A stretch of 64,000 nucleotides of DNA from Epithemia pelagica (lineage: Eukaryota > Protista > Bacillariophyta). The translations under genes were made by a program, and so were the position numbers. The stretch lies in the NCBI GenBank assembly GCA_946965045.2, contig OX337238.1, positions 2,976,001-3,040,000 of the forward strand. The letters are read 5' to 3'. This document shows positions 23,802-52,361 of this stretch, in pieces (the first letter of the stretch is position 1; each line of letters starts with the position of its first letter). The notes beneath the pieces are model-generated. The model saw nothing but the letters and a program-made list of their open reading frames with translations, made no database searches and was not told where the DNA came from.

Positions 23802-25013
23802 ATGGCGATGACACTGCAACAGCAAGCAAAGCAATCCGGGCTTTGCTTTCTGGACGTTGACAATAATAGTGAGGCACCGCAATGGAATACCAATGACTGG
23901 CCTCCCCTTTTGTGTGGATGGCGTTGTTTGCATGCATCGGTTGTGCTCAACCATCCCGAACAGGATAACAATGCACAGACGGTTGTTGTTTTGGGAGGAT
24001 ACAAACAAAATCAAGGCTTGACCAACTCAGTTCTGCTGATGAATCTGGCAGAAAAAACTAAGCAATGGCGGGAAGGACCGCCGTTAAACAGCAACCGAGC
24101 CTATCATGCTGCGGTGATTTGTAGTGGAGGAGTTTACGTGCTCGGAGGACACAACGGAAGTTCACGATTGAATAAAATCGAACGGATTGATGTTGCAAAT
24201 TTGTGTTCCGAATCAATGGAAAGCTCTACCAGCAACCAATGGACGACCCTGACTTGTCGATTGTCTACGAGAAGAAATGGATGTTCGGCTGTTGCCGTGC
24301 ACAATCGCTATATTGTCGTCATGGGTGGATACAGCGGAAACGATCTGTCGTCGGTTGATATAATCGATACAGCTATCGCAAGCAACCACACTGTGATTGT
24401 GGGACCATCCATGACAGTTGCGCGGTCTGGATGTGCTAGTGCTGTCAGTGGCCACTGCATCTTTGTTGTTGGAGGCGAAATTGGGCACAATGGAGAAGAT
24501 CTGGACTCAGTAGAGTATTTGGAGATTCATGATCCTTCAGGCAATGAGACAATGAACACATCAAGTACAGTGTTTCCATCCTCATGCCGCTGGAAACGTC
24601 ATGACAAGCTCAATCTTTCCATCGGACGGAATAGTCATGCAGTTGTAACTGTTGGAACATGTCTGATTGTTATGGGAGGTTTCTCAGCCCCGGACACTGT
24701 TGATGTCTTGGATACTCGCCGAAACACTATGTGGACCTTTCCACGATCAACAGGGCCGCGTTATCTCTCCACTGCTGTGGTTCACTCGAGGGGAATTGCT
24801 GTGATAAGTGGAGATGACAATGCTTCTTGTGCGACACTCTCCTTGGTTGACAAGAATACGTGGTGTTTTCGTCGACTCATTGAGCAGGTGCCGAGTACAA
24901 TCTTTGAGACAAAAACAGACTCACTGCGATTTACTCCAGGGCATACTACAGCATTGAAGGAGTCCGGTGAGCGCCCTAAGAAGAAGTTATTAACTGGCAA
25001 ATCTGAGACGTAG
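23802..25013 (+). CDS. Kelch paralogue K5 (403 aa; open upstream to 23586)
   Basis: Six Kelch blades; basic tail ERPKKKL. Confidence 0.9.
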   Translation: MAMTLQQQAKQSGLCFLDVDNNSEAPQWNTNDWPPLLCGWRCLHASVVLNHPEQDNNAQTVVVLGGYKQNQGLTNSVLLMNLAEKTKQWREGPPLNSNRAYHAAVICSGGVYVLGGHNGSSRLNKIERIDVANLCSESMESSTSNQWTTLTCRLSTRRNGCSAVAVHNRYIVVMGGYSGNDLSSVDIIDTAIASNHTVIVGPSMTVARSGCASAVSGHCIFVVGGEIGHNGEDLDSVEYLEIHDPSGNETMNTSSTVFPSSCRWKRHDKLNLSIGRNSHAVVTVGTCLIVMGGFSAPDTVDVLDTRRNTMWTFPRSTGPRYLSTAVVHSRGIAVISGDDNASCATLSLVDKNTWCFRRLIEQVPSTIFETKTDSLRFTPGHTTALKESGERPKKKLLTGKSET

Positions 25014-25855
25014 ACAGTGTCAATTGAGAAATATAAATACCAGTAAAACGCATTCATGAGAATGAGTACTAGGCTTCAAAGTGCTTGCTGTTCTTCCCCC
25101 TGAAAACAAGTGCGTTTACAAACATGATGGAGAGAATGTACATCACGTTGTGAAACACAAACGAACGACAGCGAACATAGTTAGAACTCACCTCAAGTAA
25201 TCACTTCGTGTTGTTGGTGCGATCTTGTGGCACAAGGAAGGATCTGTTTCAAGCACAAGCGCAAGAAAAACCAGGTGGACCTACTGCATTGCAGAAGCAA
25301 CAGTTTGGTTAGGTTCACGGAAAAAATGCAGTCCCCTCGACCGGGTTCCATATCACGACATCTTCCTCAAGCCCGAGTGCGACTGACGATTCCCATAAAA
25401 ACTCGAAAAATGTATGCCAATCCGTGCGACTGATCATGGAGAAACCGTGCGACTGATCAGTCGTTCACGCGGGACTCAAACCGAAGCTTTTCAAACGGCA
25501 TGGTGAATGGTGAGTTGAAAAATCGAGACCAAACGACAAAAAGAAGACTCTTGTTGTGTCAACCACAAGTTCACTTCTCATCCTGTCGTCAATATTCGAG
25601 AAACACGAATTTCCAGAACGGATTTTGCTTCGACGAGACGACACCGTGGAACTCCATCCGCATCGGGTTGTCAAGCAAAGCCATGTAAACTTGTCCGCAA
25701 AGGACTAGGCGTTCTGCTTCCCAATTCGGCATTATCATCCGCTTCCTCTTTTCTTTCCCCCGTGTTCTCATTTCTGCAAAAAACGAGTCCAGATAACAAC
25801 AACAACAACTTCTGTTCACTACTTCGCAACCGCAACAAGTCTCCACAACGCAATC

Positions 25856-28800
25856 ATGTCAATGATGATACGAGGAGCCAGCCACATGGGTCTCCGCAGT
25901 GTTCTACCTGTGGCTACTAGTAGTCGAAATTTGGTCCAAATGGCACTCCACGCTCAACTGCTACCATCCACGACGGCCCTACTATCGCATATGACTCCTC
26001 CTTGCTGGTTACAAAGCCCAACTGTCAAGAAGCGACATGCAATGATCTTTTCGACCATGACAGATGCCTCGCCTCCTGCACCACCCCATCCAGTGCGAGT
26101 CTGGAACGACCGTCTTCTTGTCGACCATCCAAAAAGCAGCCACTCCGCATGGAGTAGCGCCGAATCACTGATCGACAACAACAAATCCAGCGCCCTCTTT
26201 TCAGCAGCACGACCGACGGACAGTGTGGAAGAGCTCATGGCACGTGCCTGTGTCGCTCGAGAGGAATTTGCCAAACTTTCTCAAACCGATGTGGATCGAA
26301 TCTTTTTGGCCGTCGCCCATGCGGCCGACAAACAGCGAGTGCCACTGGCACAAATTGCCGTAGGTACGTACGAGACAAATTGTCGAGACGAAAAGTGTGT
26401 GTTTTTCTGACATCGCAAGGTGTCACCTCTCATATTTGTTTCTTTAATTCTATGTTTGTACATTAATGAAATGACAACGATGACGACGACATCAACGACC
26501 ACCGTCAACAGACGAAACCAACATGAATTTGGTGGAAGATAAGGTTTTAAAGAATGGTCTGGCCACTGAAATGATTCGTCATCGATACAAGGATTTGAAA
26601 ACATGTGGCAAGATTTGGCAGGACGAGGTGCATGGAATTACCAAATATGCAACACCGGTGGGAATTGTCGCATGCATTTTACCCACCACCAATCCAACGT
26701 CGACAGCCATTGCCAAGGCCCTGTTTTTAGCCAAAACACGCAATGTTGGCGTGGTTTTGCCCCATCCTCGAGCCGTACAAAGCACGGCAGCGGCCGTGCA
26801 AGTATGTCACAATGCCGGTGTAAAAGCCGGTGCACCACCCAATTGGCTCCAATGTGTCGTTGGCGCTCCCACAGTTACGGCAAGTGCCACCAATGAGAAC
26901 AACAACAAGAACGACCATCCATTCATGTCGCAATTGGAACTTTCAGATGCTGTCATGAAACATGAAAAGACAAATCTCATCTTGGCCACGGGGGGAGAAG
27001 GAATGATCAAAGGTACGCGACTGGTACATTTGCTACGAGAATGGCAATCACGTGTTTAGGTTCATGAACCCCAGCTGTTCTCATTTTTTTCTGTGGTTGC
27101 TTCTCTGTTGCTCAGCATCTTACAGCACTGGTCATCCAGCAATTGGTGGAGGCGCCGGAAATGCTCGTACGTGTGACTAGACTTTTTTGTCTATTCTCTT
27201 TCTTTAATGGCGAGATTGTGTTGTTCTCATGTTTCTATGGTTGGTTTTGTATGTTGCTGTTGCACAGCAATTTTGGTGGACGAAACGGCCGATTTGAAAC
27301 AGGCTGTGGGGTCCATTGTTTTGGGAAAGTCTTTTGACAATGGTATGATTTGCGCAGCAGAACAGTGCGTCGTTTGTGTAAATGAAGTTTACGACGAATT
27401 CAAATCGTTGCTCGAAAAACGGGGATGTACCTTTCTGTACGGTGAAGACAAGAAGAAACTAGAAGACAACATGATACGAGACGGTAAGGTCAACATCAAC
27501 TTGGTTGGTAAATCGGCCATGGTTATTGCCAAAGCTATTGGCGTTACGGTGCCACCTCATACCTTGGTGTTGGTGGCGGAGGATTCAAGGATTGGGGACC
27601 ATGCTCCGTTGAGTCACGAAAAGCTTTCTCCCATTCTGGCTGTGTATCGGGCCAAAGACTTTGACAATGGGGTTGATATTGCCGAACAATTAGCACGTTA
27701 CGGTGGCTTGGGTCATACGGCAGGCATTTATTCGACGAATCCATCACATGTGAAACACTATGGTCGCCAAATGCCCGTGGGACGCATCTTGGCCAACATG
27801 CCCACCTCCTTGAGTGCAATTGGTACCGAATTCAACCATTTTGTGGATCCCTCCTTTACCCTTGGTGTCGGAACCACTGCTGGGTCTAGCGTGAGTGAGA
27901 ATGTTGGACCCATGCATTTGTTGAACATAAAGTGTGTCGCCACGAGGCAAAAACACATGGAATGGGTGAGTGTTTGATTTTGAGAGTCTTGAGTTGACCG
28001 ATATGTTGACTGCCTCGTAACTCATACATAGTTCTTCTTCTTTTCATTGACAGTTCAAGAACCCACCCGACATTTACTATAATCGTGGGTGTTTGGAGGA
28101 AGCATTGGCCGATTGCGCGAGACCTATGAAATCAGGAGATCGTATGAGTCGATGCATGATTGTGACCGACAAAGTAATGGACTCGCTGGGGTATGTGGAC
28201 CGCGTCAAGAGAGGCCTTGTCCAGCACGGCTTTACTGTGTCCGTCTTTGACGACGTGAACCCGGATCCTGACATGGATACCGTCCGGATGGGAGTGAAAG
28301 CTTGCCAGCAATTCAAACCCGATATGATGTTATGTCTTGGTGGCGGATCTCCGATGGATGCGGGCAAGTTTATTCGTGCGTTGTACGAACATCCTGAATT
28401 GTCACTGGAAGATGCAGCGGCCCGATTCCTGGAATTGCGACAGCGCACATGTCCTTTCCCGGTCCTGGGATCGAAAATCAGAAAGGTAGTGTGTATACCC
28501 ACTACGAGTGGAACAGCTTCGGAAGTGACGCCCTTTTCTGTCATCACTGACGACAATGGAATGAAACTTCCACTGTTCTCGTACCGTTTGACTCCCGACA
28601 TTGCCATTATTGATTCCAGTTTTTGCGAAAAGTTACCGCCAAACCTGATTGCCTACGCCGGTATCGATGCCATCACGCATGCAACGGAAACACTTGTGTC
28701 GGTGGCGGCCAATGATTTTACGCAGGGTCATGGACTTCGCGCACTTCAGCTCTTGACTGATAATTTGGTGGATTCCTTTGCTACGGGCAACTCCGACGCT

Positions 28801-29552
28801 CGCGATGCTGTTCATCACGGTGCGACCTTGGCTGGTTTGGCCTTTAGTAACAGCTTTTTGGGCATTGCGCACAGCTTGGCACACAAAATGGGAGCTGCGT
28901 TTCATCTGCCACATGGATTGGCATGTGGTATCGTGTTGCCTCACGTGATTCGATTCAACAGTTCGTTGACACCCACCCGCATGGGAGTCTATCCAGTTTA
29001 TGATTATCCAAAAGCCCTGGAACAGTATGCGACCATTGCTCGCCACTTGGGACTACTCCAGGAGGACGGCAGACCGCATACCAATACGGAACTCATGGAA
29101 GCGTACATTGCCAAATTATATGACATGTACGATGCAATGAGTGTTCCCAAAACCTTTTTGGAAGCTGGATGTTCGGAAGAAGTGTTCTTGGATCAACTTG
29201 ATGATATTGCACTGCAAGCATTTGACGATCAATGTACACCCGCGAATCCAAGATTCCCTCTCATTTCTGAGCTAAAAGACATTCTGAACTCATGGAAGCG
29301 TACATTGCCAAATTATATGACATGTACGATGCAATGAGTGTTCCCAAAACCTTTTTGGAAGCTGGATGTTCGGAAGAAGTGTTCTTGGATCAACTTGATG
29401 ATATTGCACTGCAAGCATTTGACGATCAATGTACACCCGCGAATCCAAGATTCCCTCTCATTTCTGAGCTAAAAGACATTCTGAAAGAAGCATTTTACGG
29501 AAAAGACTCAATCCCCACGGAGTGTCATGAAATCGACATGCCTCTACAATAA
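25856..29552 (+). CDS. adhE: Bifunctional acetaldehyde-CoA/alcohol dehydrogenase, 5 exons (25856-26363, 26512-27012, 27116-27166, 27268-27965, 28054-29552 allowing for the 197-bp duplication)
   Basis: VEDKVLKN, PTTNPTSTAI, ILATGG.GM, GAGN.P, SFDNGMICAAEQ (catalytic Cys), GHTAG, GGGSPMDA, PTTSGTASEVTPF, DAITHATE, HSLAH, PHG (Fe ligands). Four GT-AG introns (26364-26511, 27013-27115, 27167-27267, 27966-28053) restore the frame. Confidence 0.95.
29089..29485 (+). repeat. 197-bp exact tandem duplication in the adhE 3' coding region
   Basis: Units start at 29089 and 29286 with GAA microhomology. Period is not a multiple of 3. Confidence 0.92.
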
Positions 29553-29620
29553 GAACCCTTTTTTTGACTAAGAACTTGGACTAAAAGTTTAGGATAGCGA
29601 AGAATGCATCGTGTTGATAG

Positions 29621-30292: not shown

Positions 30293-32941
30293 TTAGTGGA
30301 GAAGAGAAGGTTCCGAGCCATGGTATTCCCAAACTCCTTGCGACTGTATGTGCAACAAGTGTTGTTGCGAATGGTCCTGGTGATGGGCCTTATTATGGTT
30401 CCACAACACAGGGATGGAGGAATGCATCCGTGCTACTACAACCATCCGCCAACGATCCCTGTGCTGCCCAGCCAACCTGTTGTTGTCACGATGACAGTTT
30501 CTCCAGGACCAAGCGTTGGTCCCGAAAACCGTAACAACAACAACAACAACAACAACAAGCCAAAGTAACATGACCAGCACAGCTGATTTCCATTGAGAAT
30601 TTCTCTCCAGACTGGCGTCCTTGTTGGACCGACGGACCACAGCAAGACGACGACGACGACGACGACAAGAATCCAGCCACGTCCAGCCTATTGTTTGGTA
30701 GAGCATCCTCCAATTGGTCCACAATTCATACGACAGGCACTGGCAAACAGTCACATAAAATACATGCCACACTTGGTGTTTGATCCAGAGACGAATCGTG
30801 ACATGGAAATAGTCGTACCATGACAAATCCTTCATAGCATTGGGTCCTTCTGGAACATGACATTGTACTTCGTCCTCATCGTCATTGCGGATGTAGTCTT
30901 GGGAGAGACAATGGTTCAACACGCAGTGCATGTCGTTGGTGTTTTGACAGAGTTGATTGACACGACGTGTCTGTTCCAAAATCTCCTGGTGAAACCGCGA
31001 TTCCAAAGAATAGGCCTCCGAAACGTTGTCATGGAGGTCATCCTTGGATTGAATTCGTGAAACTGTCGATTCAGCACCGCTCTTCATGGTTGGAACGGGG
31101 GGTTCCTTCCAAAATGACGGTAACGTCTCATTTGCACTTTGGTCCTCCACGACCTTTGCCACATCTTGTTCCAGATCCACCTCCCAGGAGGAAGAGTGTG
31201 TCGTGTCTCCGGTATCCGACGACGACAAGACGAGAGACGGGGGAGACTCCAAGACCATGCATTCTTCTTCTTCATCCGAATCAAAGATAATGCATTCTTC
31301 TTCATCATCCGAATCAAAGACAATGCACTCTTCCTCATCCTTATTATCTTTTGCAGTGTGATTGTTCCTGTTTGGGTGACAAGGTGACACTGCCGAAGAC
31401 GAATGCGGATTCCAGACATTTGTCATCGACAATAAGGGCGTTCCCACAGGATCATCCTCATCGTGAGCAATCCTTGAACACGACAGGGTCGTTTTTGTGA
31501 CGTGCCTCGTACAATCGTCACCACTCGTGTCGCTACTGTCGCTGCTGTTGCAAGTCCAGCGAATGGATTGGGGGGCCGCCACCAAGGAGGAGGATGACGA
31601 TGAGGAGGACAACGACGACAATGAGGATGAATTCGAATCCAATCGTTGATGGTTTCGAGTGATGGACGACGACAAGACGGTTGTACTGGTAGCACTGATG
31701 GGGACGATGGTGGGAGTCACGGAATTGTCGTTGTTGTTCTTCTTGTCGTTGTTGTTGTTGTTTGGAGGGTCGTCATCTTGCAGTTGTGGCGGTAGAATGT
31801 TAGATTCCCCGTCGCGGCCACCTGTGCATGGCTCATGGTCCAAATGTTGGTCGTTGTCGCCATCTCGAACCGAATTCACCTCGGTTGGTGGTGGTGGTGG
31901 TGGTAGTGTGTTGTTGTTCTTGTTCTTGTTGTTCTTGTCGACTATGGGAGGATCTTGTGGTGGTGTCTCTTGTAGTTTGTCCTGAATGTTTGGTATTAAG
32001 AAAGGAGATGCAGAGGCATTGCAATGGGTGATGGTTTCCCCCAACTCTACTCCTCTCATCATCATCATCCAGTGCAAGGCCTTGTCGTGTTCTTGCTTTG
32101 TCATTCGACACAACCGATCAATCTGGACTTGCTGCTGACGTACCGTCATGCTTCTTCTTGTTGTTGTTGGTGGTGTCGTGGGAGTGAACCTCTTGGGCCT
32201 TCTTTGGACAAAGGTTGTTGGAGTGTCGGTGGGAGCATCTCCTCCTCCTCTTTCCTCATGGACGATTGCCAAGGATGAAGATCCAGGACCCAGGCAGGGT
32301 GGTTGGCAATCCTCCTCCTGCTGATGGAGTACGAACGAGTTGTGGCTGTCGGTAGATTCCGTTCCAGAACAAGTAGTGTCTACTTGCAACAAAGAACAGG
32401 AGGAAGAAGAACCACAAGAATCCTCCTCCTCCTCAGTGTTTCCGTGTGGATCTTTTGGCTGCTCTTGTTGTGGTGGTGATTGTTCTTGTTCTTGTTCTTG
32501 TTCTTGTTCTTGTTCTTGTTGTGGACTGGAAGAGGAAGAGGAGGATCCCCACCATCCATGACACACATTGCAACAAACACCACAAGCGTTCTCACCCCCA
32601 AAGCCGCGTGGAAGGAAAGCTTGTCGACGACGTCGTCGTCTTTTGTGTTTGTTGTTGGGAGTACTATTGCTGCTCCTCCAAATCAATTGGACACGTCGTC
32701 GACGAGGACGTCGAATGGCACATGATTGGTAGCCACCACCACGACAACAACAACTCGGACAACACTGATCTTCGTCCGGTGGTTGCCATTGGTTGTTTCC
32801 TGATAATGTTTGTTGTTGTTGTTGTTGTTCGAGCATGACGACACTGTGGGTCCAGGCCTGCCACAAGTTGTAAAAGGCGACATGCTCATCCGGATTGGGC
32901 TCCACCACTGCCTCGGCAGAACCCTGCGAGGAGCATGTCAT
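30293..32941 (-). CDS. Low-complexity/disordered protein with a C-terminal hydrophobic helix (~882 aa); only intact family member in the window
   Basis: 2.65-kb open frame from ACCATG at 32941. Poly-Q/S/E/N/P tracts, a W/Y/C-rich segment (WYDYFHVTIRLWIKH) and a TM-like stretch AVLVMLLWLVVVVVVVVTVF. Many decayed paralogues nearby. Confidence 0.7.
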   Translation of the reverse strand: MTCSSQGSAEAVVEPNPDEHVAFYNLWQAWTHSVVMLEQQQQQQTLSGNNQWQPPDEDQCCPSCCCRGGGYQSCAIRRPRRRRVQLIWRSSNSTPNNKHKRRRRRRQAFLPRGFGGENACGVCCNVCHGWWGSSSSSSSPQQEQEQEQEQEQEQSPPQQEQPKDPHGNTEEEEDSCGSSSSCSLLQVDTTCSGTESTDSHNSFVLHQQEEDCQPPCLGPGSSSLAIVHEERGGGDAPTDTPTTFVQRRPKRFTPTTPPTTTRRSMTVRQQQVQIDRLCRMTKQEHDKALHWMMMMRGVELGETITHCNASASPFLIPNIQDKLQETPPQDPPIVDKNNKNKNNNTLPPPPPPTEVNSVRDGDNDQHLDHEPCTGGRDGESNILPPQLQDDDPPNNNNNDKKNNNDNSVTPTIVPISATSTTVLSSSITRNHQRLDSNSSSLSSLSSSSSSSSLVAAPQSIRWTCNSSDSSDTSGDDCTRHVTKTTLSCSRIAHDEDDPVGTPLLSMTNVWNPHSSSAVSPCHPNRNNHTAKDNKDEEECIVFDSDDEEECIIFDSDEEEECMVLESPPSLVLSSSDTGDTTHSSSWEVDLEQDVAKVVEDQSANETLPSFWKEPPVPTMKSGAESTVSRIQSKDDLHDNVSEAYSLESRFHQEILEQTRRVNQLCQNTNDMHCVLNHCLSQDYIRNDDEDEVQCHVPEGPNAMKDLSWYDYFHVTIRLWIKHQVWHVFYVTVCQCLSYELWTNWRMLYQTIGWTWLDSCRRRRRRLAVVRRSNKDASLERNSQWKSAVLVMLLWLVVVVVVVVTVFGTNAWSWRNCHRDNNRLAGQHRDRWRMVVVARMHSSIPVLWNHNKAHHQDHSQQHLLHIQSQGVWEYHGSEPSLLH

Positions 32942-34356: not shown

Positions 34357-35568
34357 ATGACAACAGCACTGAAACAGCAAGCAAAACAATCTGGGCTTGC
34401 CTTTCTGGACAGTGACAATAACAGTCTTGCGCCTAATTGGAATACCAATGACTGGCCTCCCCTTTTGGGTGGGTGGCGTAGGCACCATGATTCAGTCGTG
34501 CTCGACCATCCCGAACAGGATAACAATGCACAGACGGTTGTTGTTTTGGGAGGATACAAACAAAATCAAGGCTTGACCAACTCAGTTCTGCTGATGAATC
34601 TGGCAGAAAAAACTAAGCAATGGCGGGAAGGACCGCCGTTAAACAGCAACCGAGCCTATCATGCTGCGGTGATTTGTAGTGGAGGAGTTTACGTGCTCGG
34701 AGGACACAACGGAAGTTCACGATTGAATAAAATCGAACGGATTGATGTTGCAAATTTGTGCTCGGAATCAATCGAAAGCTCTACCAGAAACCAATGGACG
34801 GCTTTGACTTGTCGATTGACTACGGCAAGAAATGGATGTTCGGCTGTTGTCGTGCACAATCGCTATATTGTCGTGATCGGTGGATCCAACGGAAACTTTT
34901 TGTCGTCGGTTGATATAATCGATACAGCTGCGCCAAGCAACCACACTGTGATTGTGGGACCATCCATGACAGTTCCTCGGTCTGGTTGTGCAAGTGCTGT
35001 CATTGGCCACCGCATTTTTGTTGTTGGAGGCCTCACCGGGTACAATGGAGATGATTTCAAATCAGTGGAGTATTTGGAGATTCATGATTTTCCCGGCAAT
35101 GAGACAATGGACACAGCAAGTGCAGTGTTTACATCCTCACGCCGTTGGACGAGTCACAACGAGGTCAATCTTTCCATCGGACGATGTATTCATGCAATTG
35201 TAGCTGTTGGATCATGTCTTATTGTGATGGGAGGTATCTTGGCCCCGGAGACTGTTGAAGTCGTGGACACTCGACGGAACACTGTGTGGACCTTTCCCCA
35301 ATTAACAGGGTCACGTTATTCATGCAGTGCTGTGGTTCACTCGAGGGGAATTGCTGTGATTAGTGGAGATGACAATGCTTCTTGTGCGACACTATCGTTG
35401 TTTGACAAGAATACGTGGTGTTTTCGTCGACTCATTGAGCAGGTGCCAAGTACAATCTTTGGAACAAGCAGAGACTCACTGCGATCTGCTCAAGGGTGTA
35501 CTACAGCATTGAAGGAGTCCGGTGAGCGCTCTAAGAAGAAGTCATCAACTGGCAAAACTGAGACGTAG
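34357..35568 (+). CDS. Kelch paralogue K6 (403 aa)
   Basis: Six Kelch blades; ACCATG start. Confidence 0.9.
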   Translation: MTTALKQQAKQSGLAFLDSDNNSLAPNWNTNDWPPLLGGWRRHHDSVVLDHPEQDNNAQTVVVLGGYKQNQGLTNSVLLMNLAEKTKQWREGPPLNSNRAYHAAVICSGGVYVLGGHNGSSRLNKIERIDVANLCSESIESSTRNQWTALTCRLTTARNGCSAVVVHNRYIVVIGGSNGNFLSSVDIIDTAAPSNHTVIVGPSMTVPRSGCASAVIGHRIFVVGGLTGYNGDDFKSVEYLEIHDFPGNETMDTASAVFTSSRRWTSHNEVNLSIGRCIHAIVAVGSCLIVMGGILAPETVEVVDTRRNTVWTFPQLTGSRYSCSAVVHSRGIAVISGDDNASCATLSLFDKNTWCFRRLIEQVPSTIFGTSRDSLRSAQGCTTALKESGERSKKKSSTGKTET

Positions 35569-37491: not shown

Positions 37492-37525
<34 letters not shown>

Positions 37526-38678
37526 CCACAGGAGTGCCAATGACGAGAAGAATCGATTGCCGAGCATAGAGAGTCTCTTCTTCTTCTCCTTTTCATCCTC
37601 CGACGACAAGGTCCGTGGTGGTCTATGTATAAAGATCGTTGGCAAAACATCCAACATACAGACAGACAGGAATGGGGGAGCTGGTGGAGCATTCGACAGG
37701 ATGCCGCCGTCCTCGTTGCCGAATTTCGCGGGTCCTTTTTGGGCCACTATTTAATACATGAGGATGATACCCAGCCCGAAACGCCGCCATGGAGCTCTAC
37801 ACCAGTCATCCTCGAACCAAACCAAAATAAAACAAAACCATGGAGCCGCATTCACAACCACCACAACCACAAGGACGAGGACTACACAATGCTGCGACAA
37901 ACTGGAGCAAGAGACTAGCATTCTACCATAACCATTGGCACTGTTTCGCAACGACTTGTTGAGTTGCGACACTGCTCGTGCCACACAGTGAGGAGAGAAC
38001 GAGCGATGATGAGGCTAATGATTGAACCATGAGCTCACAAAGAGAGAGCCAAAGTCGCTGTCTCAACGTGGAAGCTCCTAGCATTTGTTGCATCTTTGCG
38101 TTTGCCAGTGTGGGACAACCGTGTGTGATCGATGATTGGATTGGAACCTATGGATTTGGCCCATTTCGTTGCGCATGGAGGAGGATAGAGCGTTTGGCTG
38201 TGATGCTGATGTATTGTACAAACAGCTAGAAGGAATTTGAAAAGTGCCTCAAGACTGTAACTGACAAGTACTGCTAACTTACCAATATACAGTGGCAAAG
38301 GGGTTCCAGTGAGGCCACGCGTTCTTCTAAATGGTCAGTGTATTCGTGGAATCTCTGGATTTGTGCCGAAGCAGTTATTTTCGTGGATGGTTTTGGACCC
38401 GTTCATCTGTCCAAGGTCATCCATCCGATGACTCAAAGAAGGATGGTTTTGGACGTGTTCATCTGTCCAAGGCCATCCATCCGAGGATATACGACCATGA
38501 TTCAAATCGCCGCGTAGAGGTGCGTCCGTCGTTGCTGCCGTCTTTGGTTCCTGCTTTGGTGTGAAAGGTCCAAAATATTCAGTCCATTTTGTTCGGAGTC
38601 CATTTTCGTATTTTTTTGAGGAGAAAGACGAAACTCTGAGGTCCATTCCTTGGTGCTGTCATAAAATCTGCAAGTACC

Positions 38679-39896
38679 ATGACGACTACACAGCAACAGC
38701 ATGCAAACCAATCTGGGCTTGCCTTTCTCGACATTAATAATAACAGTAACGAGCCACATTGGAATACCAGTGACTGGCCAACCCTTTTGGGTGGGTGGCG
38801 TCGGTGGCATGCATCGGCTGTGCTCGACCATCCCGACCAGGATAACACTGCACAGACGGTTGTTGTTTTGGGAGGATACAAACAAAATCAAGGCTTGACC
38901 AACTCAGTTCTGCTGATGAATCTGGCAGAAAAAACTAAGCAATGGCGCGAAGGACCGCCATTAAACCGCAACCGAGCCTATCATGCTGCGGTGATTTGTA
39001 ACGGAGGAGTTTACGTTATCGGAGGACACAATGGAAGATCATGTTTGGAAAGTATCGAACGGATTGATGTTCAAAATTTGTGTTCCGAATCAATGAAAGG
39101 CTCTACCAGCAACCAATGGACGACACTGACTTGTCGATTGTCTACGGCAAGAGATGAATGTTCGGCTGTTGCCGTGCACAATCGCTATATTGTCGTGATT
39201 GGTGGAAACAACAACGGAAAGTATTTGTCATCGGTTGATGTAATTGATACAGCTGTGAGAAGCAGCCATACAGTGACTGTGGGACCATCCATGTCAGTTC
39301 CTCGGTCTTGTTGTGCTAGCGCTGTCATTGGTAATCGCATTTTTGTTGTTGGAGGCTACAATGGGCACAATAGACAAGAAGGTCTCAAGTCAGTGGAGTA
39401 TTTGGAAATGTATGATCCTTCAGGCATTGAGACAATGAACACAGCAAATGCAGTGTTTTCATCCTCATATCGTTGGACACGTCATGACAAGCTCAATCTT
39501 TCCAGCCGACGGCGAGATCATGGAGTTGTAGCTGTTGGATCATGTCTGATTGTTGTGGGAGGTTTCTTAGCCCCGGAGACTGTTGAAGTCTTGGATACTC
39601 GCCGAAATTCTGTGTGGACCTTTCCCTGATCAACAGGGCCAGATAATGGGTATAGTGCTATGGTTCACTCGAGGGAAATAGCTGGGATTGGTGGAAGTGA
39701 CAATGCTCCTTGTGCGACACTCTCCTTGGTTGACAAGAATACGTGGTGTTTTCGTCGACTGATTGAGCAGGTGCCGAGTAGAATCTTTGGGACAAGGACA
39801 AACTCACCTGGGTCTTCCCCGGAACATACTACAGCATGGAAGGAGTCTCATGAGCTCCCTAATGAGAAGTTATCATCTGGCAAAACTGAGGCGTAA
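38679..39896 (+). pseudogene. Kelch paralogue K7 with an in-frame TGA at 39627-39629 before blade 6
   Basis: TTTCCC-TGA-TCAACAGGG where paralogues have CGA/CAA/CCA. The frame continues to 39896. Confidence 0.85.
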
Positions 39897-42343: not shown

Positions 42344-43555
42344 ATGACGACACTGCAACAGCGAGCACAGCAATCCGGGCTTGTCTTTGTTGACAGTGAC
42401 AATATTAGTGATGCGCCACAATGGAATGTCAATGACTGGCCTCCCCTTTTAGGTGGGTGGCGTTGGTGGAATGCATCGGTTGTGCTCGACCATCCCGAAC
42501 AGGATGACAGGGCACAGACGATTGCAGTTTTGGGAGGACGCAAACAAGATCGACGCTACACCAACTCAGTGTTGTTGTTGAGTTTGGGAGATGAAAACAA
42601 GCAATGGCGGGAAGGACCGCCACTGAACGACAACCGAGCCGATCATGCTGCGGTGGTTTGTCGCGGAGGAGTTTACGTGATCGGAGGATGCAACCGAAGT
42701 TCAGACTTGGATACTGTCGAATTGATTGATGTTCAAAACTTGTGTTCAGGGGCGGCGGTACGCACCACCAGCAACCAATGGACAACCTTGAATTGTCGAC
42801 TGACTATGGGAAGAAAAGGATTTTCGGCCGTTACGGTGTACAATCGTTATATCGTCGTCATGGGTGGATGCTGCAACGGAAACTATTTGTCGTCGGCTGA
42901 TATAATCGATACAGCTATCGCAAGCAACCACACTGCGATTGTGGGACAATCCATGACAGTTCCTCGTTGTGGTTGCGCAAGTGCTGTCATTGGTGATCGC
43001 ATTTTTGTTGTTGGAGGCTACAATGGGCACAATGCAGAAGACATCAAATCAGTGGAGTATTTGGAAATGCATGATCCATCCGGCAATGAGACAATGAACA
43101 CAGCAAGTGCAGTGTTTCCATCCTCATGCTGTTGGACACGTCATGACAAGCTCAATCTCTCCATCCGACGGAGTGATCATGCAGTTGTAGCTGTTGGATC
43201 ATGTCTTATTGTTATGGGAGGTCGCTTAGCCGTGGACAGTGTTGAAGTCTTGGATACTCGCCGAAACACTATGTGGACCTTTCCACTATCAACAGGGCAC
43301 AGTTTTGGCTGTAGTGCTGTGGTTCACTCGAGGGGAATTGCTGTGATTAGTGGAGCTGACAATGCTTCTTGTGCGACACTATCGTTGAGTGACAAGAATA
43401 CGTGGTGTTTTCGTCGACTCACTGAGCAGGTGCCGAGTGCAACCTTTGGGTCAAGAACAGACTCACTGCGATCTGCTCCGGAACCTGCTACAGTATTGAA
43501 GAAGTCTGGCGAGCGCCCCAAGAGGAAGTTATCAACAAACAAAATCGAGACATAA
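42344..43555 (+). CDS. Kelch paralogue K8 (403 aa)
   Basis: Six Kelch blades; ACCATG at 42344. Confidence 0.9.
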   Translation: MTTLQQRAQQSGLVFVDSDNISDAPQWNVNDWPPLLGGWRWWNASVVLDHPEQDDRAQTIAVLGGRKQDRRYTNSVLLLSLGDENKQWREGPPLNDNRADHAAVVCRGGVYVIGGCNRSSDLDTVELIDVQNLCSGAAVRTTSNQWTTLNCRLTMGRKGFSAVTVYNRYIVVMGGCCNGNYLSSADIIDTAIASNHTAIVGQSMTVPRCGCASAVIGDRIFVVGGYNGHNAEDIKSVEYLEMHDPSGNETMNTASAVFPSSCCWTRHDKLNLSIRRSDHAVVAVGSCLIVMGGRLAVDSVEVLDTRRNTMWTFPLSTGHSFGCSAVVHSRGIAVISGADNASCATLSLSDKNTWCFRRLTEQVPSATFGSRTDSLRSAPEPATVLKKSGERPKRKLSTNKIET

Positions 43556-46014: not shown

Positions 46015-47838
46015 CTCCCGATCGTACCCTCTCCAAAAACTCCTCTTTTTTTCTTCTCAGCTTTTCCTCTGCGTTTTTCTTTTCTGGCAGAGGCTCATTC
46101 TCTTGCCCTTCTTTGGTATATCTACTCTCTCATGCTCTTCGTTTTCAATGATGATGAATGAAAACCGGTGGTCTCTGTTCATTTTGTTCATCGGTTGGAG
46201 GATTCCCGAGTCCCCAGTCCCCAGGTACTTTCGAGCCCATACTCCAAAGTCGATCCATCCGATCCCGTCTCAGATGCCCGCGCGACCACAAAAAAGTTCC
46301 CCCCAGCACCTGCAACCCCCCCCCACTAAACGGGGCATAGCAGGAGTAGCTAGACTAACATTACTCTATTAGCTCTAGGTAGTAGGAGTAGGAGTAGCAA
46401 CAAAAGAAGCCAAAAGATCCATAGATGTGCTTCTTTTCAAACGAACCACACAATGATAAAACGACAACACTAACGACGGCCCACACATTGGCTCATTGCC
46501 AGTGTTTGTGTCAAGGATAATGCCGGCAATCCAGAAGCCAGACAAACTACAATACAACTCGGTGACCCACCACAACCGTAATAACAACCAGGACAAGGAC
46601 GATGCTGCTTCCAAGCAAATGAGCCAATACAAACGCACTCTATACCATCATCCTTACTAAGACCAACACGACGAGAATGATTCCGCGGTTCCAAACTAAG
46701 GCGTGCTGCTCGAATGCCGACATTTTTCTCGTGTCACATGATGAATGTGGATGACAACAAATCGATTGCCGGTTGGATAATATAGAGTCACCACCGAGGT
46801 TGTATTCCCTCCTTCTCCGACAACATGGGTGGACCTCAAGTGCCAGACGGTTTGTTTCCAAAAGTGAGAGGCGTGCTGCTGGAAGTGCGAGACGAGACCT
46901 CGCCGTGGCACCCACACAGTGCTTGCTGAACTATACTGTCAGATCCAACGAGAACGTGTATCGAAGTTTGCGAATCGTCCAAGTTCACAGCCACAATTGT
47001 GTTGTTGTTGCTGGTGGTAAATGACGAGGTATAAAGGTAGAACCATACCAGACGGCAAAGGAGGAGAACCAGCCGGATTTAAAAAGCTGTCGTTGTCTTT
47101 GTTAAATCCGTCGTCTTTGCAGAATTCCGAGGGTCCTTTCTGGCCCATATAGAATGCGTGAGGAAGAAACCTAGCCCGAAAAAACACCCATCAATCCTCG
47201 AAATAATCACCACAGCAGCAGTCACAACCACAACAACGAAGATTGATGTGATTGCTTCTACTGATCCTCTGCTCCAGTACAAAAAGTCCAATTGAATCAT
47301 TCAATTTCCGGAAGAATCGTTCCAAGTAAAGTATGGAGGGTTTGGAATGGAATCCATTTCTCCTCAGAGTTGTGATATTGTGGTGAGTATTCGAAGAATT
47401 GACCATTGACCATGCATGGCTGTGTGACAGACTGAGCTCCCGGCCGCTCGTTGGAAACGAAGAAAGGAGAATGTAATGCCCATTCAAATGAGACTTGCTT
47501 TCTTTGTGCTTGTTGTTGTCGGTACCTACGTTGGAGTTGGTACAAGAGTTGTGTAAATGCCCTCAAGACTGCAACGGACAAACAGTACTACCGATACAGT
47601 GACAAAACGGTTCCAGTGAGGCCAAGCCCACGAAATGGGATTGTCAGCGTTTGTGGAATCTCTGGGATGGTGCGAGGGTGGCTTTTGTCTTGGTGGACCC
47701 TCAAAGGATGAAGGATACAATGATTGAAATCGCGCCGTAGAGGTCCGTCCGTCGTTGCCGCCGTCTTTCCTTCCGGTTTTGGTGTGAAAGGTCATCACGT
47801 TCGGAGTCCATTTTTTAGTGTTGGAAAGTACCACGACG

Positions 47839-49044
47839 ATGACACTGCAACAGCAAGCAAAGCAATCCGGGTTTTGCTTTCTGGACATCGACAATTATAG
47901 TTAGGCGCCGCAATGGAATACCAATGACTGGCCTCCCCTTTTGGGCGGGTGGCGTTATTCGCATGCATCGGTTGTGCTCAATCATCCCGAACAGGATAAC
48001 AATGCACAGACGGTTGTTGTTTTGGGAGGAAACAAACAAAATCAAGGCTTCACCAACTCAGTTCTGCTATTGCATTTGACAGAAGAAAACAAGTATTGGC
48101 GGGAAGGACCGTCTTTGAACGACAAGAGACGCTCACATGCTGCGGTGGTTTGTAGCGGAGGAGTTTACGTGCTCGGAGGACACAACGGAAGTTCACGATT
48201 GGATAAAATCGAACGGATTGATGTTGCAAATTTGTGTTCACAATCAATTGAAAGCTCTACCAGCAACCAATGGACGACCCTGACTTGTCGATTGTCCACG
48301 AGATGTAATGGATGTTCGGCTGTTGCCGTGCACAATCGCTATATTGTGGTGATCGGTGGATCCAATAGAGACCCTTTGTCGACGGTTGACATAATCGATA
48401 CAGCTGTGCCAAGCAACCACGCTGTTATTGCAGGGCCATCGATGACAGTTCCTCGTTGTGGTTGTGCAAGTGCTGTCATTGGTGATCGCATTTTTGCTGT
48501 CGGGGGCGACAATTGGCACAATGAAGAAGTGCTCCAATCAGTGGAGTATTTGGAGATTCCTGATCCTTCAGGCAATGAGACACTGAACACAGCAAGTGCA
48601 GTGTTTCCATCCTCACGCCGTTGGACGAGTCACAACGAGGTCAATCTTTCCATCAATCGGTGTTTTCATGCAATTGTAGCTGTTGGATCATGTCTTATTG
48701 TGATGGGAGGTATCTTCGCCCCGGAGACTGTTGAAGTCTTGGATTCTCGACGAAACACGTTGTGGACCTTTCCCCAATTAACAGGGTCACGTTTTTCATG
48801 CACTGCTGTGGTTCACTCGAATGGAATTGCAGTGATTGGTGGAAGTGACAATGCTTCTTGTGCGACACTATCGTTGAGTGATAAGAATACGTGGTGTTTT
48901 CGTCGACTCACTGAGCAGGTGCCGAGTACAATCTTTGGGACCAAAACAGACGCACTGCCATCTGCTCTGGAAGCAACTACAGCATTGAAGGAGTGTTATG
49001 AGCGCCCTAAGAAGATGTTATCAACTGGCAAAACTGAGACGTAA
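47839..49044 (+). pseudogene. Kelch paralogue K9 with a nonsense codon (GAG>TAG, 47902-47904)
   Basis: First ATG mutated to ACG (47833); TAG at codon 22 from the ATG at 47839; rest of the frame open; upstream hairpin deleted. Confidence 0.85.
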
Positions 49045-50916
49045 AACGTGTTAATTGAGAAATACAAGTACTAGTAGTAAAACACAGTGATGCAAATTGT
49101 TGTTTTCTGCGCCGTCCTCTCCTCGTGTTGGCAAAAAAGTGGTAGTGGTGTATGGCCTGAAGCTACCCTTGGCTTTTGTTGCAACGATATCCGTTTTTGA
49201 ACTCGGCCCCTACATTGCATGGCAAAAATCACCACATAAATGGAAAGGAAATGCTCATCCTTTCCATGTTTTGCTGCTGCTCAATTCGGTTTGCGCAAAT
49301 AAGCAATCGTAGAACTTTCTGCGTTCCTTGTCACTCTCCAACAAAATCCTGAACACTTTTCTCAAGACTCATTGTAAAAGGGAGATTGGATATTCCAGAA
49401 TGGCAACTGGCACCCAAGTTGGCCGTTGTAAATGCACTGCCACGACTGACCCTTGCCGTGATGCAAGTCGTGAACAAACCGAGTTGCCCTGCGTGAGACA
49501 TAGGATGCCTCCAGTTGTCGCCTTGATGAACTAGGGTTGGTGACCCCACTCTTCAACTCCATGTGACAAAAGATCGTCCTGGCAATTCGCATGGGACCAA
49601 GCCGAGAACCGTTGGTCTTTTTGAATCAAGGGGCCTTTCAGGCATGTCAATACGTGGAACGAGAGGTGAACCACACGTCAGTGCTTGTAGGGGCGGGCAG
49701 TCGAGAACAACACCAAGGCATCGTTTTCCCGAATTCGAGCAACCAGACAGAGTGTCCAAACACTTTTATGTGTTGACCTATTGACACGACGCCACCAACG
49801 CCACGATACGTTGTCCTGGTCGAATTCAAGCCTGGGAAAGTATAGAGACCCGAAACTTGGGGGGGGGGGGGGGGTTCTAAAGGCGTCATGGTGAAGAGTC
49901 GTGTAGGTGAACAGATGCTGGATTCATGAAGTGGTCTGTCTATTTGGGAATGGAAGGCACCAATGACCAATGAGGGTATTGTTGTGTGCTGTTCGTATAC
50001 TTGGTGGCCGTCAATTTGGAGCGATTCGAGGCGCACTGGTCAAACACGACATCAAACTACAAAAGAATCAAACAACACTTAATGAGAGAGTACATTCCAC
50101 AACCAAACCACCGAACCGTGAATTGGATTTCTTGGCCGTACCTATCGACAAGAGCAACACCAAACAGGGGGACGATGTGAAAGGGAGAAAATGACTCTGT
50201 GAACGAGTCTCCGTGGAAGCAACCCATTACGAGTGTCGAGAATGTACGCCAGAGACGAGACTGTTCGAGTATACTTCTCTGTTCGTTTTGGTCCTCTTCC
50301 AGCTCCCATTCATTGTGGTCTGTGCACAATCAGCAAAAATTGTAACCACCATTATACCATCACAACGAGAGACCAACGAAGTCCACAAACATCAAGTGAC
50401 TGGAATTCAGTGGTCATTTTGTTATTGTGTCGCCGCCTTTCGACATTCCACTCATGGTTCATCATTCCGTCTCTATGATCTCTTCAAAGAAAAAACAAGA
50501 TTCCCGTAAAAACTCGAAAATTGTCTTGGAATCCGTGCGACTGATCATTCGTTCTCGCGGGATTCAAACCGAAGCTTTTGAAAAATCGAGACCAAACGAC
50601 AGAAAGAAGACTCTTGCTGTCAACCACAAGTCCATGTCGTCGAAGCCTTTGATGCTTTGTTGTGATGGTCTTCCAGAGTAAAGAAAGATTCCCGGTCCCT
50701 TTATTATGGGTATTTGCCCTGAGGTATTTGTGCCGGTTGCATCTATATGATTCTTCGTGTCGTTTCCCCAGGTCCGCTGCCAATTTCAAGTGATCTCGAA
50801 AGGAGGTTCGAAGGTCTTCAAGGTTACAGATAGGCCACGCGTTCTTCGAAATTGGATTGTCAGCGCGTTCGTGGAATCTCTGGTTTTGAGCCCGGGTCGC
50901 TGTTTCTGTTTTTCGT

Positions 50917-51032
50917 GGATGGTTTTGGACCCGTTTATCTGTCCAAGGCCATCCATCCGATGAATGATTGAAATCGCCGCTGTGGAGGTGCGTCCGTCGC
51001 TGCTACCGTCTTTCGTACCGGTTTTGGTGTGA
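50917..51032 (+). promoter_or_regulatory. Kelch leader: hairpin plus 22-codon uORF (50964-51032)
   Basis: MIEIAAVEVRPSLLPSFVPVLV* with several synonymous differences from other copies. Confidence 0.5.
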
Positions 51033-51146
51033 AAGGTCCAAAATATTCAGTCCATATCGTTCGGAGTCCATTTTCGTATTTTTTCGAGGAGAAAGACAAA
51101 GCTCTGAGGTCCATTCCTTGGTGTTGTTATAAAATCTCAAAGTATC

Positions 51147-52361
51147 ATGATGACAACACTGAAACAGCAAGCAGAACAATCCGGGCTTTGCTTTCTGGAC
51201 ATCGACAATTATAGTGAGGCGCCGCAATTGAATACCAATGACTGGCCTCCCCTTTTGGGTGGGTGGCGTTATTCGCATGCATCGGTTGTGCTCAATCATC
51301 CCGAACAGGATAACAATGCACAGACGGTTGTTGTTTTGGGAGGAAACAAACAAAATCAAGGCTTCACCAACTCAGTTCTGCTATTGCATTTGACAGAAGA
51401 AAACAAGTATTGGCGGGAAGGACCGCCGTTGAACAACAACCGAGGCAGTCATGCTGCAGTGGTTTGTCGCGGAGGAGTTTACGTGATCGGAGGATGCAAT
51501 CGAAGTTCATGCTTGGATAGTATCGAACGGATTGATGTTCAAAAGTTGTGTTCAGGGACAGCGGTACGCACCACCAGCAACCAATGGACAACCTTGAATT
51601 GTCGATTGTCCACGGCAAGAGATGGATGTTCGGCCGTTACTATCTACAATCGTTATATTGTCGTCATTGGTGGATGCAATCGAATCGGATACAATTTTTC
51701 GACGGTTGATATAATCGATACAGCTGTGCTAAGCAACCACACTGTGATTGTGGGACCACCCATGACAGTTCCTCGGTGTGGTTGTGCTAGTGCTGTCATT
51801 GGTAATCGTATTTTTGCTGTTGGAGGCCACAATGGAGCAGATATCGAGTCAGTAGAGTATTTGGAAATGCATGATCCTTCAGGCATTGAGACAATGGACA
51901 CAGCAAGTGCAGTGTTTCCATCCTCATGCCGTTGGACAGTTCATGGCCAACTCAATCTTTCCATGCGACGGAATCATCATGCAGTTGTAGCTGTTGGATC
52001 ATGTCTGATTGTGATGGGAGGTTCCTTAGTAGCGGACACTGTTGAAGTCTTGGATACTCGACGAAACACTGTGTGGAGCTATCCCCGATCATCAGGGCTG
52101 CGTTGTATCTTCAGGAGCGCTGTGGTTCACTCGAGGGGAATTGCTGTGATTAGTGGATATGACAGTCCTTCTTGTGCGACACTCTCCTTGGTTGACAAGA
52201 ATACGTGGTGTTTTCGTCGACTCACTGAGCAGGTGCCAAGAAGTATAATCTTTGGGACAAGAACAGACGGACTGGAATCTAGTCCAGGGCCTACTTTAGC
52301 ATTGAAGGAGTCTGGTGAGCGCTCTGAGAAGAAGTTATCAACAAGCATAATCGAGACATAG
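51147..52361 (+). CDS. Kelch paralogue K10 (404 aa)
   Basis: Six Kelch blades; intact ORF. Confidence 0.9.
   Translation: MMTTLKQQAEQSGLCFLDIDNYSEAPQLNTNDWPPLLGGWRYSHASVVLNHPEQDNNAQTVVVLGGNKQNQGFTNSVLLLHLTEENKYWREGPPLNNNRGSHAAVVCRGGVYVIGGCNRSSCLDSIERIDVQKLCSGTAVRTTSNQWTTLNCRLSTARDGCSAVTIYNRYIVVIGGCNRIGYNFSTVDIIDTAVLSNHTVIVGPPMTVPRCGCASAVIGNRIFAVGGHNGADIESVEYLEMHDPSGIETMDTASAVFPSSCRWTVHGQLNLSMRRNHHAVVAVGSCLIVMGGSLVADTVEVLDTRRNTVWSYPRSSGLRCIFRSAVVHSRGIAVISGYDSPSCATLSLVDKNTWCFRRLTEQVPRSIIFGTRTDGLESSPGPTLALKESGERSEKKLSTSIIET

Follow-up and report, generated by a model that had tools for sequence, protein, structure and literature searches.

The window, a 64,000-nucleotide stretch of Epithemia pelagica DNA, holds part of a tandem and segmentally duplicated array of intronless Kelch genes. 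In all likelihood, the copies of this array swap short stretches by ordinary ectopic gene conversion, which is homology-driven and non-reciprocal and takes place between non-allelic copies. K6, for example, is a mosaic with segments nearest to K5, K2, K9 and K1. Of the 11 copies in the window, seven are intact and have a start codon of their own; the ten copies aligned with MAFFT share 78.8-88.6% identity over the whole gene. The Kelch family comprises several hundred similar copies, all seen so far in one assembly. Six copies, and the lesion of a seventh, are as follows:

K5, 23802..25013, plus strand: intact Kelch gene of 403 codons (alignment and lesion table; assigned to Kelch by homology to K6)
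K6, 34357..35568, plus strand: intact gene for a predicted six-blade Kelch propeller of 403 amino acids (Pfam, AlphaFold, tract table)
K7, 38679..39896, plus strand: one premature TGA at codon 317 (39627-39629), otherwise open to the normal end
K8, 42344..43555, plus strand: intact Kelch gene (lesion table)
K9, 47833..49044, plus strand: ACG at the usual start, in-frame TAG at 47902-47904, zero other lesions
K10, 51147..52361, plus strand: intact Kelch gene (lesion table)
A7 run of K2, 6384..6390, plus strand: sole frame-breaking lesion of K2, a one-base slip in the A-run

The homologous run has seven A in K2, nine in its sister B1 and eight in the intact K2-type gene C1.

The genes are predicted to encode stand-alone six-blade Kelch propellers. 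Both K6 and K10 match Kelch_1 (PF01344; 94 and 86 bits, cut-off 20.1) and PF24681 (98.7 and 114.4 bits, cut-off 50). The Pfam search of these two proteins returned Kelch-type families only, with no BTB, BACK, F-box, NB-ARC or TIR domain. About 40 residues lie upstream of blade I, and the proteins lack the N-terminal domain of BTB-Kelch and F-box-Kelch proteins. The AlphaFold model of K6 (pLDDT 80.5, pTM 0.81) has six sets of strands, as in a six-blade propeller; its best Foldseek matches are the Kelch domains of KLHL12 and Keap1 (TM 0.77-0.84, target-normalised).

Each blade has two variable loops, B-C and D-A, between conserved strands. These loops sit on the face where Kelch domains bind partners or substrates. 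They make up 25% of codons, yet contain 26 of the 45 most variable positions, and their dN/dS is 1.12 versus 0.34 in the strands. However, the disordered tail has the same dN/dS of 1.12 as the top loops, so a simple dN/dS test with values close to 1 cannot part positive selection from relaxed constraint. The tract table and the loop map together support the view that exchange has brought loops into new combinations; these combinations were presumably kept by selection.

An earlier note on this DNA, made by reading the letters, described four near-identical pairs (K5/K6, K9/K10, K6/K9 and K10/K8), and all four exist. Three pairs that it gave approximately are 1-3 bp out of register; ungapped comparison yields 23-32% identity because of this offset, and the MAFFT alignment shows that the tracts are real. 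The shared tracts are:

K5/K6, K5 23951..24228 and K6 34506-34783, plus strand: 281 columns, 3 mismatches, codons 50-143, global p<0.001
K6/K9, K6 35135..35270 and K9 48611-48746, plus strand: 127/136 identical, codons 260-305
K9/K10, K9 47875..48111 and K10 51189-51425, plus strand: 243 columns, 3 mismatches, codons 15-93
K10/K8, K10 51548..51606 and K8 42742-42800, plus strand: 56/59 identical, next best copy 78%
K6/K2, K6 34838..34978 and K2 6663-6803, plus strand: 151 columns, 1 mismatch, codons 161-208 (approximately blade III), global p=0.002
K6/K1, K6 35298..35365 and K1 3971-4038, plus strand: 0 mismatches, codons 314-337
K5/K9, K5 24137..24314 and K9 48168-48345, plus strand: 178 columns, 7 mismatches, global p=0.007
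K7/K1, K7 37711..39032 and K1 ~2026-3383, plus strand: long tract of ~1.3 kb
K6 short patch, 35507..35522, plus strand: identical to K5, derived in K6 at five sites relative to its sisters A3 and B3

The K5/K6 tract has an exact core in which K5 23950-24205 and K6 34505-34760 are identical at 256/256 positions. Outside the tract these two genes differ at ~15% of sites; the chance of 256 identical bases is ~1e-18. Between K9 47877-48111 and K10 51191-51425, 232 of 235 positions agree, and the next best copy reaches 90.2%. The next best copy in the K6/K9 region reaches 81.6%. The K10/K8 tract gives blade II a long C-D loop of a distinct type. Both of these last pairs fall short of global significance in the permutation test; each forms a clade with 100% bootstrap on a long branch, (K6,K9) in the tree of columns 870-1050 and (K8,K10) in that of columns 360-620.

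The earlier note also held that closest relatives change along each gene and that simple whole-gene duplication would not give such a pattern. A GENECONV-like permutation test and per-segment trees, akin to the GENECONV run and per-blade trees that it had proposed, were run on the alignment together with PHI. These three independent tests reject a single history. Permutation of polymorphic sites finds seven pairs with global p<0.05 when only exact runs are counted, and, with mismatches tolerated, nine significant tracts that measure 77-359 bp. PHI gives z = -15.8, with none of 2000 permutations as low. Five maximum-likelihood trees, one per segment, were compared by the AU test: each rejects the whole-gene tree as well as the trees of the remaining segments (p<0.05 throughout, mostly <0.001). 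The Hudson-Kaplan Rm of 55 is an overestimate, as recurrent mutation at 12-20% divergence inflates the four-gamete count. Given pair-specific tracts and incongruent segment trees, whole-gene duplication cannot, on the aligned sequences, account for the patchwork. Purifying selection on an embedded element was rejected as the cause of the tracts, as the identity is pair-specific and other copies are 7-10% different there. Targeted hypermutation outside the tracts was likewise rejected; the divergent parts match other paralogues and are hence templated.

The majority of tracts, at 16-460 bp, lie inside a gene between flanks that remain locus-specific, a pattern characteristic of ectopic gene conversion. 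In K5/K6, K9/K10, K2/K6 and K6/K9, identity peaks within the coding region. The flanks reach 35-60% identity in a forced alignment and are thus unrelated; upstream of the K5/K6 tract they are unalignable. K7/K1 is the exception to this internal, non-crossover form: its tract runs from ~1 kb upstream of the gene through codon 118, after which identity is 80-88%.

The clearest view of single patches comes from a recent triplicate composed of K6, A3 (same contig, ~245 kb off) and B3 (another contig). In ~1 kb of non-coding flank the three show 0-2 differences per 100 bp (~1%), whereas in the coding region differences occur in patches of 10-18%. These patches are embedded in 3.7-kb sister blocks which are ~99% alike elsewhere. 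Clustered differences account for 31 of 34 coding differences between K6 and A3 and for 71 of 77 between K6 and B3 (>90%), and they match other paralogues. Neighbouring K6/A3 differences lie a median of 5 bp apart versus 25 bp expected; none of 20000 permutations gave a median as small. One A3 patch, corresponding to K6 positions 35332-35491, is identical to K2 over 163 columns (0 mismatches); it has 2 mismatches to the intact K2-type gene C1. Sister copies polarise the direction of exchange for this K2-type patch in A3 and for the K5-type patch in K6 (35507-35522), and for only two or three events overall. Among recent duplicates, the differences due to conversion outnumber those due to point mutation by roughly ten to one.

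Chimeric genes could instead be made by unequal crossing-over of misaligned copies. Block duplications, deletions and rearranged gene order are seen when the window, L001 and L002 are compared, and K1/K7 has a single in-gene breakpoint with similarity extending ~1 kb upstream. Because of this upstream similarity, the K1/K7 tract may be left over from a duplicated block or stem from unequal crossing-over, not from conversion. As a general account, crossing-over is distinctly improbable: most tracts have two breakpoints in the coding region between unrelated flanks, and a single crossover cannot yield patches inside near-identical 3.7-kb sister blocks.

Segmental gene conversion, as the earlier note proposed, is thus the best reading of the permutation tracts, segment trees, flank profiles and sister-block patches. 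In outline, a break or gap in one copy would be repaired from a paralogue lying 3 kb to >200 kb away on the same contig. Donor sequence would replace 16-460 bp of the recipient, occasionally >1 kb, and a single tract would carry anything from no variable loop to approximately four into new surroundings. Many such events in the course of evolution, combined with the duplication of blocks and the death of genes, would make the nearest relative switch every few hundred bases. The repair mechanism and the direction of most events are presumed in this scheme.

The exchanges had been described as blade-scale. In size this is apt, since tracts span 20-120 codons and a blade is ~50 codons. The register of tracts with blade boundaries is weak (P=0.03) and is biased by the location of variable sites. 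Shuffling of blades out of register is excluded: K6 compared with itself has no internal DNA repeats, and its blades have no DNA similarity to each other.

It had also been suggested that nonsense copies and fragments may serve as donors. The broken copies K7 and K9, and perhaps also K2, do have tracts in common with intact genes. However, none of these cases shows a broken copy to be the donor, and no lesion was found copied into any intact gene in the lesion and tract tables. The T at 47902 which creates the K9 stop codon is private to K9, being absent from every other copy, yet it falls within the K9/K10 tract; it therefore either postdates the exchange or was not transferred in it. For fragments, the suggestion finds no support: K4, K11 and the small fragments have no high-identity tract with any copy.

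A programmed or somatic form of diversification would have one or a few expressed Kelch genes rewritten in vegetative growth from an archive of silent sequences, pseudogenes and fragments among them. Such a system would fit the presence of a broken copy (K7, K9, or K2 if truly broken) in seven of the nine significant pairs, a share which does not exceed the chance expectation of 53% for three broken among ten copies. It would also fit the frameshifted K2 being the best match of the patch in intact A3, ahead of intact C1, and the report that homologous chromosomes often recombine at mitosis in clonal diatom cultures (10.1101/2020.11.08.373134). Nonetheless, this explanation is highly improbable. 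Most copies in the window are intact with start codons of their own, the upstream region is related across copies, and there is no sign in the window of one expression site set against an archive. The K9 stop never reached K10, intact genes are free of copied lesions, and fragments are free of tracts. Tract mismatches form a continuum from 0/256 up to 6.6%, versus a background of 12-20%, and this range of tract ages fits germline events over evolutionary time.

That the mosaics are assembly artefacts, from chimeric joins or over-correction between paralogues, is scarcely credible: the family does have hundreds of similar copies, public k-mer contigs fragment inside genes, and the K2 lesion is in a homopolymer, where long-read consensus is known to be error-prone, but a chimeric join would leave one switch point and the other locus's flank, whereas the tracts are internal 60-280 bp patches with both flanks locus-specific; the copies are just 79-89% alike, too different for read confusion over kilobases; the contig is 1.09 Mb, with a name format that suggests a long-read assembler; the K6 form of the K5/K6 tract recurs in sister A3, 245 kb away; and the unique flanks are matched without difference by contigs of three runs (X1-X3; at most two samples from one study). 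Over 47000-52999 the k-mer contigs are 100-480 bp pieces inside genes, none of which bridges a tract, and their depth is hundreds to thousands in genes, where many paralogues are summed, versus 60-80 in the unique flank.

Ectopic conversion in the Kelch array has well-known counterparts. The earlier note drew an analogy with VSG and avian immunoglobulin diversification. Chicken immunoglobulin pseudo-V gene conversion is a case similar to that of the VSG mosaics. In Trypanosoma brucei, segmental gene conversion that draws on pseudogenes and silent genes builds mosaic VSGs (PMC3708902). The Kelch genes resemble both systems in having short templated patches, several donors per gene and broken copies in the repertoire. 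Unlike those systems, the array has no visible expression-site and archive layout, and most copies are intact and appear independently expressible. The likeness stays an analogy; there is no indication of an expression site or of a silent archive, nor of somatic change.

Clusters of plant NLR (NBS-LRR) genes, such as coffee SH3, evolve by birth-and-death, gene conversion between paralogues and positive selection on solvent-exposed residues (PMC3113787). The Kelch array shares with them tandem paralogues and pseudogenes, conversion tracts, block duplications and deletions, and a dN/dS that is raised on the binding surface of a repeat protein relative to its conserved scaffold. It differs in that the Kelch propeller stands alone, without NB-ARC, TIR, BTB or F-box, and in that the host is not a plant and the several hundred Kelch copies were all seen in one assembly.

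In Plasmodium falciparum, mitotic recombination between var genes creates in-frame chimeric genes (PMC4270465). Both var and Kelch are large hypervariable families in which non-allelic exchanges preserve reading frame and domain architecture and newly combine variable blocks between conserved ones. However, var events were observed directly in mitotic clonal lines, whereas the Kelch array shows a historical footprint only; and var genes encode surface antigens with mutually exclusive expression. Mitotic interhomolog recombination in diatoms consists of allelic exchange and loss of heterozygosity (10.1101/2020.11.08.373134). Unlike exchange in the Kelch array, it is not between paralogues, but it would give a recombination-prone vegetative genome where ectopic repair could occur.

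A bolder reading, which we consider improbable, is that the binding faces of several hundred recognition proteins, forming a germline repertoire, owe their diversity mainly to short-tract conversion, including very short patches confined to one hypervariable codon, and that such conversion is also active in vegetative growth, so that clones, like those of Plasmodium with its var genes, produce new variants of the Kelch genes at a rate that can be measured. If true, this would be an immune-like or recognition repertoire of a type so far undescribed in this algal group; a literature search found no description of Kelch family expansion in diatoms. The mechanism itself is ordinary, patchwork paralogues made by conversion being textbook for NLR, MHC, var and VSG genes. 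It is the setting that is noteworthy: hundreds of putative stand-alone Kelch propellers with variable loops on the binding face, which offer a testable handle on the diversification of a possible recognition repertoire in a microalga. Unless recombination is modelled, gene phylogenies, site models of dN/dS and orthology assignments in the Kelch family are unreliable.

The window corresponds to positions 947,935-1,011,934 of ctg1337l (1,085,916 bp) in the ENA assembly ERZ21939226. Its G+C content is 47%, and its ORFs are sparse and eukaryote-like. It bears a head-to-tail array of intronless Kelch genes of ~403 codons each, numbered K1 to K12 along the window:

K1, 3030-4199 (+), changes confined to the disordered tail
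K2, ~6230-7393 (+), one base lost
K3, ~9772-10938 (+), changes confined to the disordered tail
K4, 17628-18350 (+), truncated and divergent, only ~61% alike
K5, 23802-25013 (+)
K6, 34357-35568 (+)
K7, 38679-39896 (+), premature TGA at codon 317 as sole lesion
K8, 42344-43555 (+)
K9, 47833-49044 (+), ACG in place of the usual start and a TAG at 47902-47904
K10, 51147-52361 (+)
K11, 53402-54304 (-), divergent copy
K12, 60433-61566 (+), changes confined to the disordered tail

Whole-gene identity between aligned copies is 78.8-88.6%. K6 and K10 match Pfam Kelch models well over the cut-off and match no other domain. A word-based protein search gave more than 600 relatives; the best 120 of these all lie on ENA assembly contigs, and the four loci examined are all from ERZ21939226. 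No description of this Kelch family was found in a literature search. The following copies outside the window are used here:

L001, 726,663-747,874 of ctg1337l (the same contig as the window), copies A1-A5
L002, on ctg1253l, copies B1-B4
L004 3001-4212, at the end of ctg1253l, C1, an intact K2-type gene (protein P0008)

L001 and L002 are 93-95% alike to the window over 9 kb; they may be paralogous or partly allelic to it.

The Kelch paralogues are mosaics. The earlier note named four near-identical stretches, and all four are real: K5 23950-24205 equals K6 34505-34760 at 256 of 256 positions, and the three approximate pairs, whose register was off by 1-3 bp, stand once aligned. These are K6/K9 (127/136; next best copy 81.6%), K9/K10 (232/235; next best 90.2%) and K10/K8 (56/59; next best 78%). 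Since ~15% of sites differ between K5 and K6 outside their tract, an exact 256-bp core would arise by chance with a probability of ~1e-18. Under random reordering of 473 polymorphic sites, exact runs were significant (global p<0.05) in 7 pairs; with mismatches allowed, the permutation test gave nine tracts of 77-359 bp (K1/K7, K9/K10, K5/K6, K5/K7, K6/K7, K5/K9, K1/K2, K2/K6 and K1/K6). The PHI statistic lies 15.8 standard deviations under the permutation mean. The Hudson-Kaplan minimum is 55 events, part of the four-gamete failures at this divergence being recurrent mutation. Maximum likelihood trees of five gene segments, whose borders were picked with the alignment already seen, disagree: K9 and K10 are sisters in the first (99% support), K8 and K10 in the second (100%), and K9 and K6 in the fourth (100%). 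The AU test, run on the same borders, rejects for each segment every tree but its own (the four from other segments as well as that of the whole gene), so the trees are not congruent across blades and the mosaic claim stands.

The K5/K6, K9/K10, K2/K6 and K6/K9 tracts are two-ended patches; identity peaks within the coding region, and both sides are essentially unalignable, a form that favours conversion over crossover. K1 and K7 are near-identical from ~1 kb upstream down to codon 118, and because this similarity reaches upstream, block duplication or crossover may be involved in that pair. Chimeric assembly would produce a single switch with foreign flank, whereas internal patches are observed, and the K5/K6 tract is present in its K6 form in A3 as well, 245 kb off. 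K-mer contigs from four runs of the same organism (one study, at most three samples; none recorded as RNA) and one low-share metagenome contain the region, and contigs of runs X1, X2 and X3 match the unique flank 47000-47545 with zero differences. Within the genes these contigs are pieces of 100-480 bp whose depth is the sum of many paralogues; pooled in this way, they show no alternative base at the K9 TAG, which gives that stop weak support.

Conversion is best evidenced by K6, A3 and B3, which lie in recently triplicated sister blocks of 3.7 kb. Over ~1 kb of non-coding flank these blocks show 0-2 differences per 100 bp; within the gene there are patches of 10-18% difference. Between K6 and A3, 31 of the 34 differences fall in three clusters with a total span of 197 bp, and 71 of 77 are clustered between K6 and B3. 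Isolated substitutions among the three number only 3-9 per gene, equal to the flank level. Among recently duplicated intact copies, differences due to patch replacement thus outnumber those due to point mutation roughly tenfold. The patches are templated by other paralogues: A3 carries a patch, derived by comparison with K6 and B3, that matches K2 at all of 163 columns, the derived K6 patch 35507-35522 equals K5, and K3 differs by 2 mismatches from the A3 patch at 35002-35052. The DNA-level comparison covered 20 of several hundred copies, so the donors of many patches, for example the 460-bp patch of B3, lie outside the sample. Patches contain 67-92% of the differences in K6/A3, K6/B3 and A4/B4, all pairs of intact sisters. 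The frameshifted sisters K2 (6230-7393) and B1 (L002 136-1348) have 11 scattered substitutions and zero patches; this single pseudogene pair, an anecdotal case, would fit selection retaining converted patches only in working genes.

Tract divergence is 0 in K5/K6 and K1/K6, 1.2% in K9/K10, 2.5% in K1/K7 and 6-7% in K6/K9 and K1/K2, against a background of 12-20%. Given this spread, exchange is a long-running process rather than one burst. Partners within the window are 3 to 36 kb apart; the K2-type patch of A3 implies a distance of ~218 kb, or a donor on another contig. Exchange on the scale of blades, as had been proposed, agrees with tract length (20-120 codons, i.e. blade size). The K2/K6 tract (codons 161-208) coincides with blade III; other tracts, at codons 15-93, 50-143, 57-108, 112-171, 260-305 and 314-337, correspond to no single blade. 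Over 14 tract ends the mean distance to the blade limits is 9.5 residues, compared with 13.7 at random (P=0.03); any register that this suggests is weak and biased, as the ends are not independent and blade limits fall at variable D-A loops, where tract ends are most readily detected. No DNA similarity was found between blades of one gene, which limits exchange to equivalent positions of different copies.

A model from 46 family members (pLDDT 80.5, pTM 0.81) predicts a propeller of six blades, followed by ~50 disordered residues as a C-terminal tail; its closest structural matches are the Kelch domains of KLHL12 and Keap1. The modelled blades span roughly residues 40-98, 99-157, 158-207, 208-275, 276-319 and 320-350. 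Amino-acid entropy is maximal right after each Gly-Gly (B-C loops) and right before each A strand (D-A loops). In Kelch domains of Keap1/KLHL topology, B-C and D-A loops make up the substrate-binding face; by analogy they would form the putative face in this family, the faces being set by that topology and not by model coordinates. For classes fixed in advance from the secondary structure of the model, dN/dS is 1.12 in B-C and D-A loops, 0.34 in strands, 0.68 in other loops and 1.12 in the disordered tail. Of the 45 most variable positions, 26 lie in B-C and D-A loops, which make up 25% of codons. Such variability is compatible with diversifying selection and also with relaxed constraint. The proposal that conversion creates new loop combinations is borne out, since each significant tract carries zero to four of these loops. 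They also hold 20 of the 38 mismatches inside near-identical tracts. In-tract mismatches often alter two or three bases of one hypervariable codon, with both states occurring in other copies, as at codons 42, 43 and 70 in K1/K7 (codons 42-43 are K1 3153-3158 and K7 38802-38807) and codon 275 in K6/K9 (K6 35179-35181); conversion over very short patches, or selection acting repeatedly on these codons, may account for them. Within the K9/K10 tract, K10 has a private change at codon 28 (51228-51230), where Leu replaces a nearly invariant Trp28.

K7, K9 and K2 have tracts in common with intact genes, so broken copies do take part in exchange, as the earlier note suggested. Its extension to fragments is not supported: when a tract must reach at least 93% identity over 40 bp, neither K4 nor K11 nor any of four small fragments shares one with another copy. 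The K9 TAG lies within the K9/K10 tract and its T is private to K9, so the stop postdates the exchange or at least was never transmitted. No intact gene was found with a tract covering a lesion of its partner. The A3 patch is the only polarised event pointing to a broken copy; it has no mismatches with K2, 2 with the frameshifted B1 and 2 with the intact C1. Within this K2-type subfamily, the B-C loop of blade I contains a run of A that varies in length (A7 at 6384-6390 in K2, where it is the sole lesion, A8 in C1, A9 in B1 at L002 ~337), and the sisters K2 and B1 are thus each one base out of frame there, in opposite directions. The spot may be a slippage hot spot or a homopolymer consensus error of long reads; the K2 lesion may be later than the transfer to A3, and K2 may in fact be intact. 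With the K9 stop private, intact-gene tracts clear of partner lesions, C1 close to the A3 patch and the K2 lesion ambiguous, broken copies are no more than candidate donors.

Plant NLR clusters resemble the Kelch array in birth-and-death and in conversion among paralogues; positive selection on exposed residues is also described there (PMC3113787). The var genes resemble it in exchanging in frame among non-allelic copies (PMC4270465). VSG mosaics draw on pseudogenes as donors and have an expression site (PMC3708902); both features would be hypothetical in the Kelch array. Frequent mitotic recombination in diatoms (10.1101/2020.11.08.373134) makes vegetative-phase events conceivable in the array, although that exchange is allelic.

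Several other genes neighbour the Kelch copies:

25856-29337, between K5 and K6, iron-type alcohol dehydrogenase / AdhE-like gene, broken into four ORFs
30293-33043 (-), low-complexity ORF, ~916 aa, with runs of Gln, Ser, Asn and Arg
55013-55954 (-) and 61906-62778 (-), paralogous pair inside the array, ~300 aa each

The nearest Atlas clusters of the AdhE-like gene are bacterial; only a C-terminal fragment of it is found in L002 (4473-5105). The low-complexity ORF accompanies the K6 block in all three copies, with sisters of 920 aa and 847 aa (L001 1-1670 and L002 5886-8429), and no Pfam family was recorded for it in these sister loci. The region of the paralogous pair was first read as possibly BTB-like; a Pfam scan of the gene at 55013-55954 gave no match. 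Immediately past the B4 block lies a Copia-type retrotransposon (RVT_2; L002 20406-21212); at the homologous position L001 continues as a K7-like gene.
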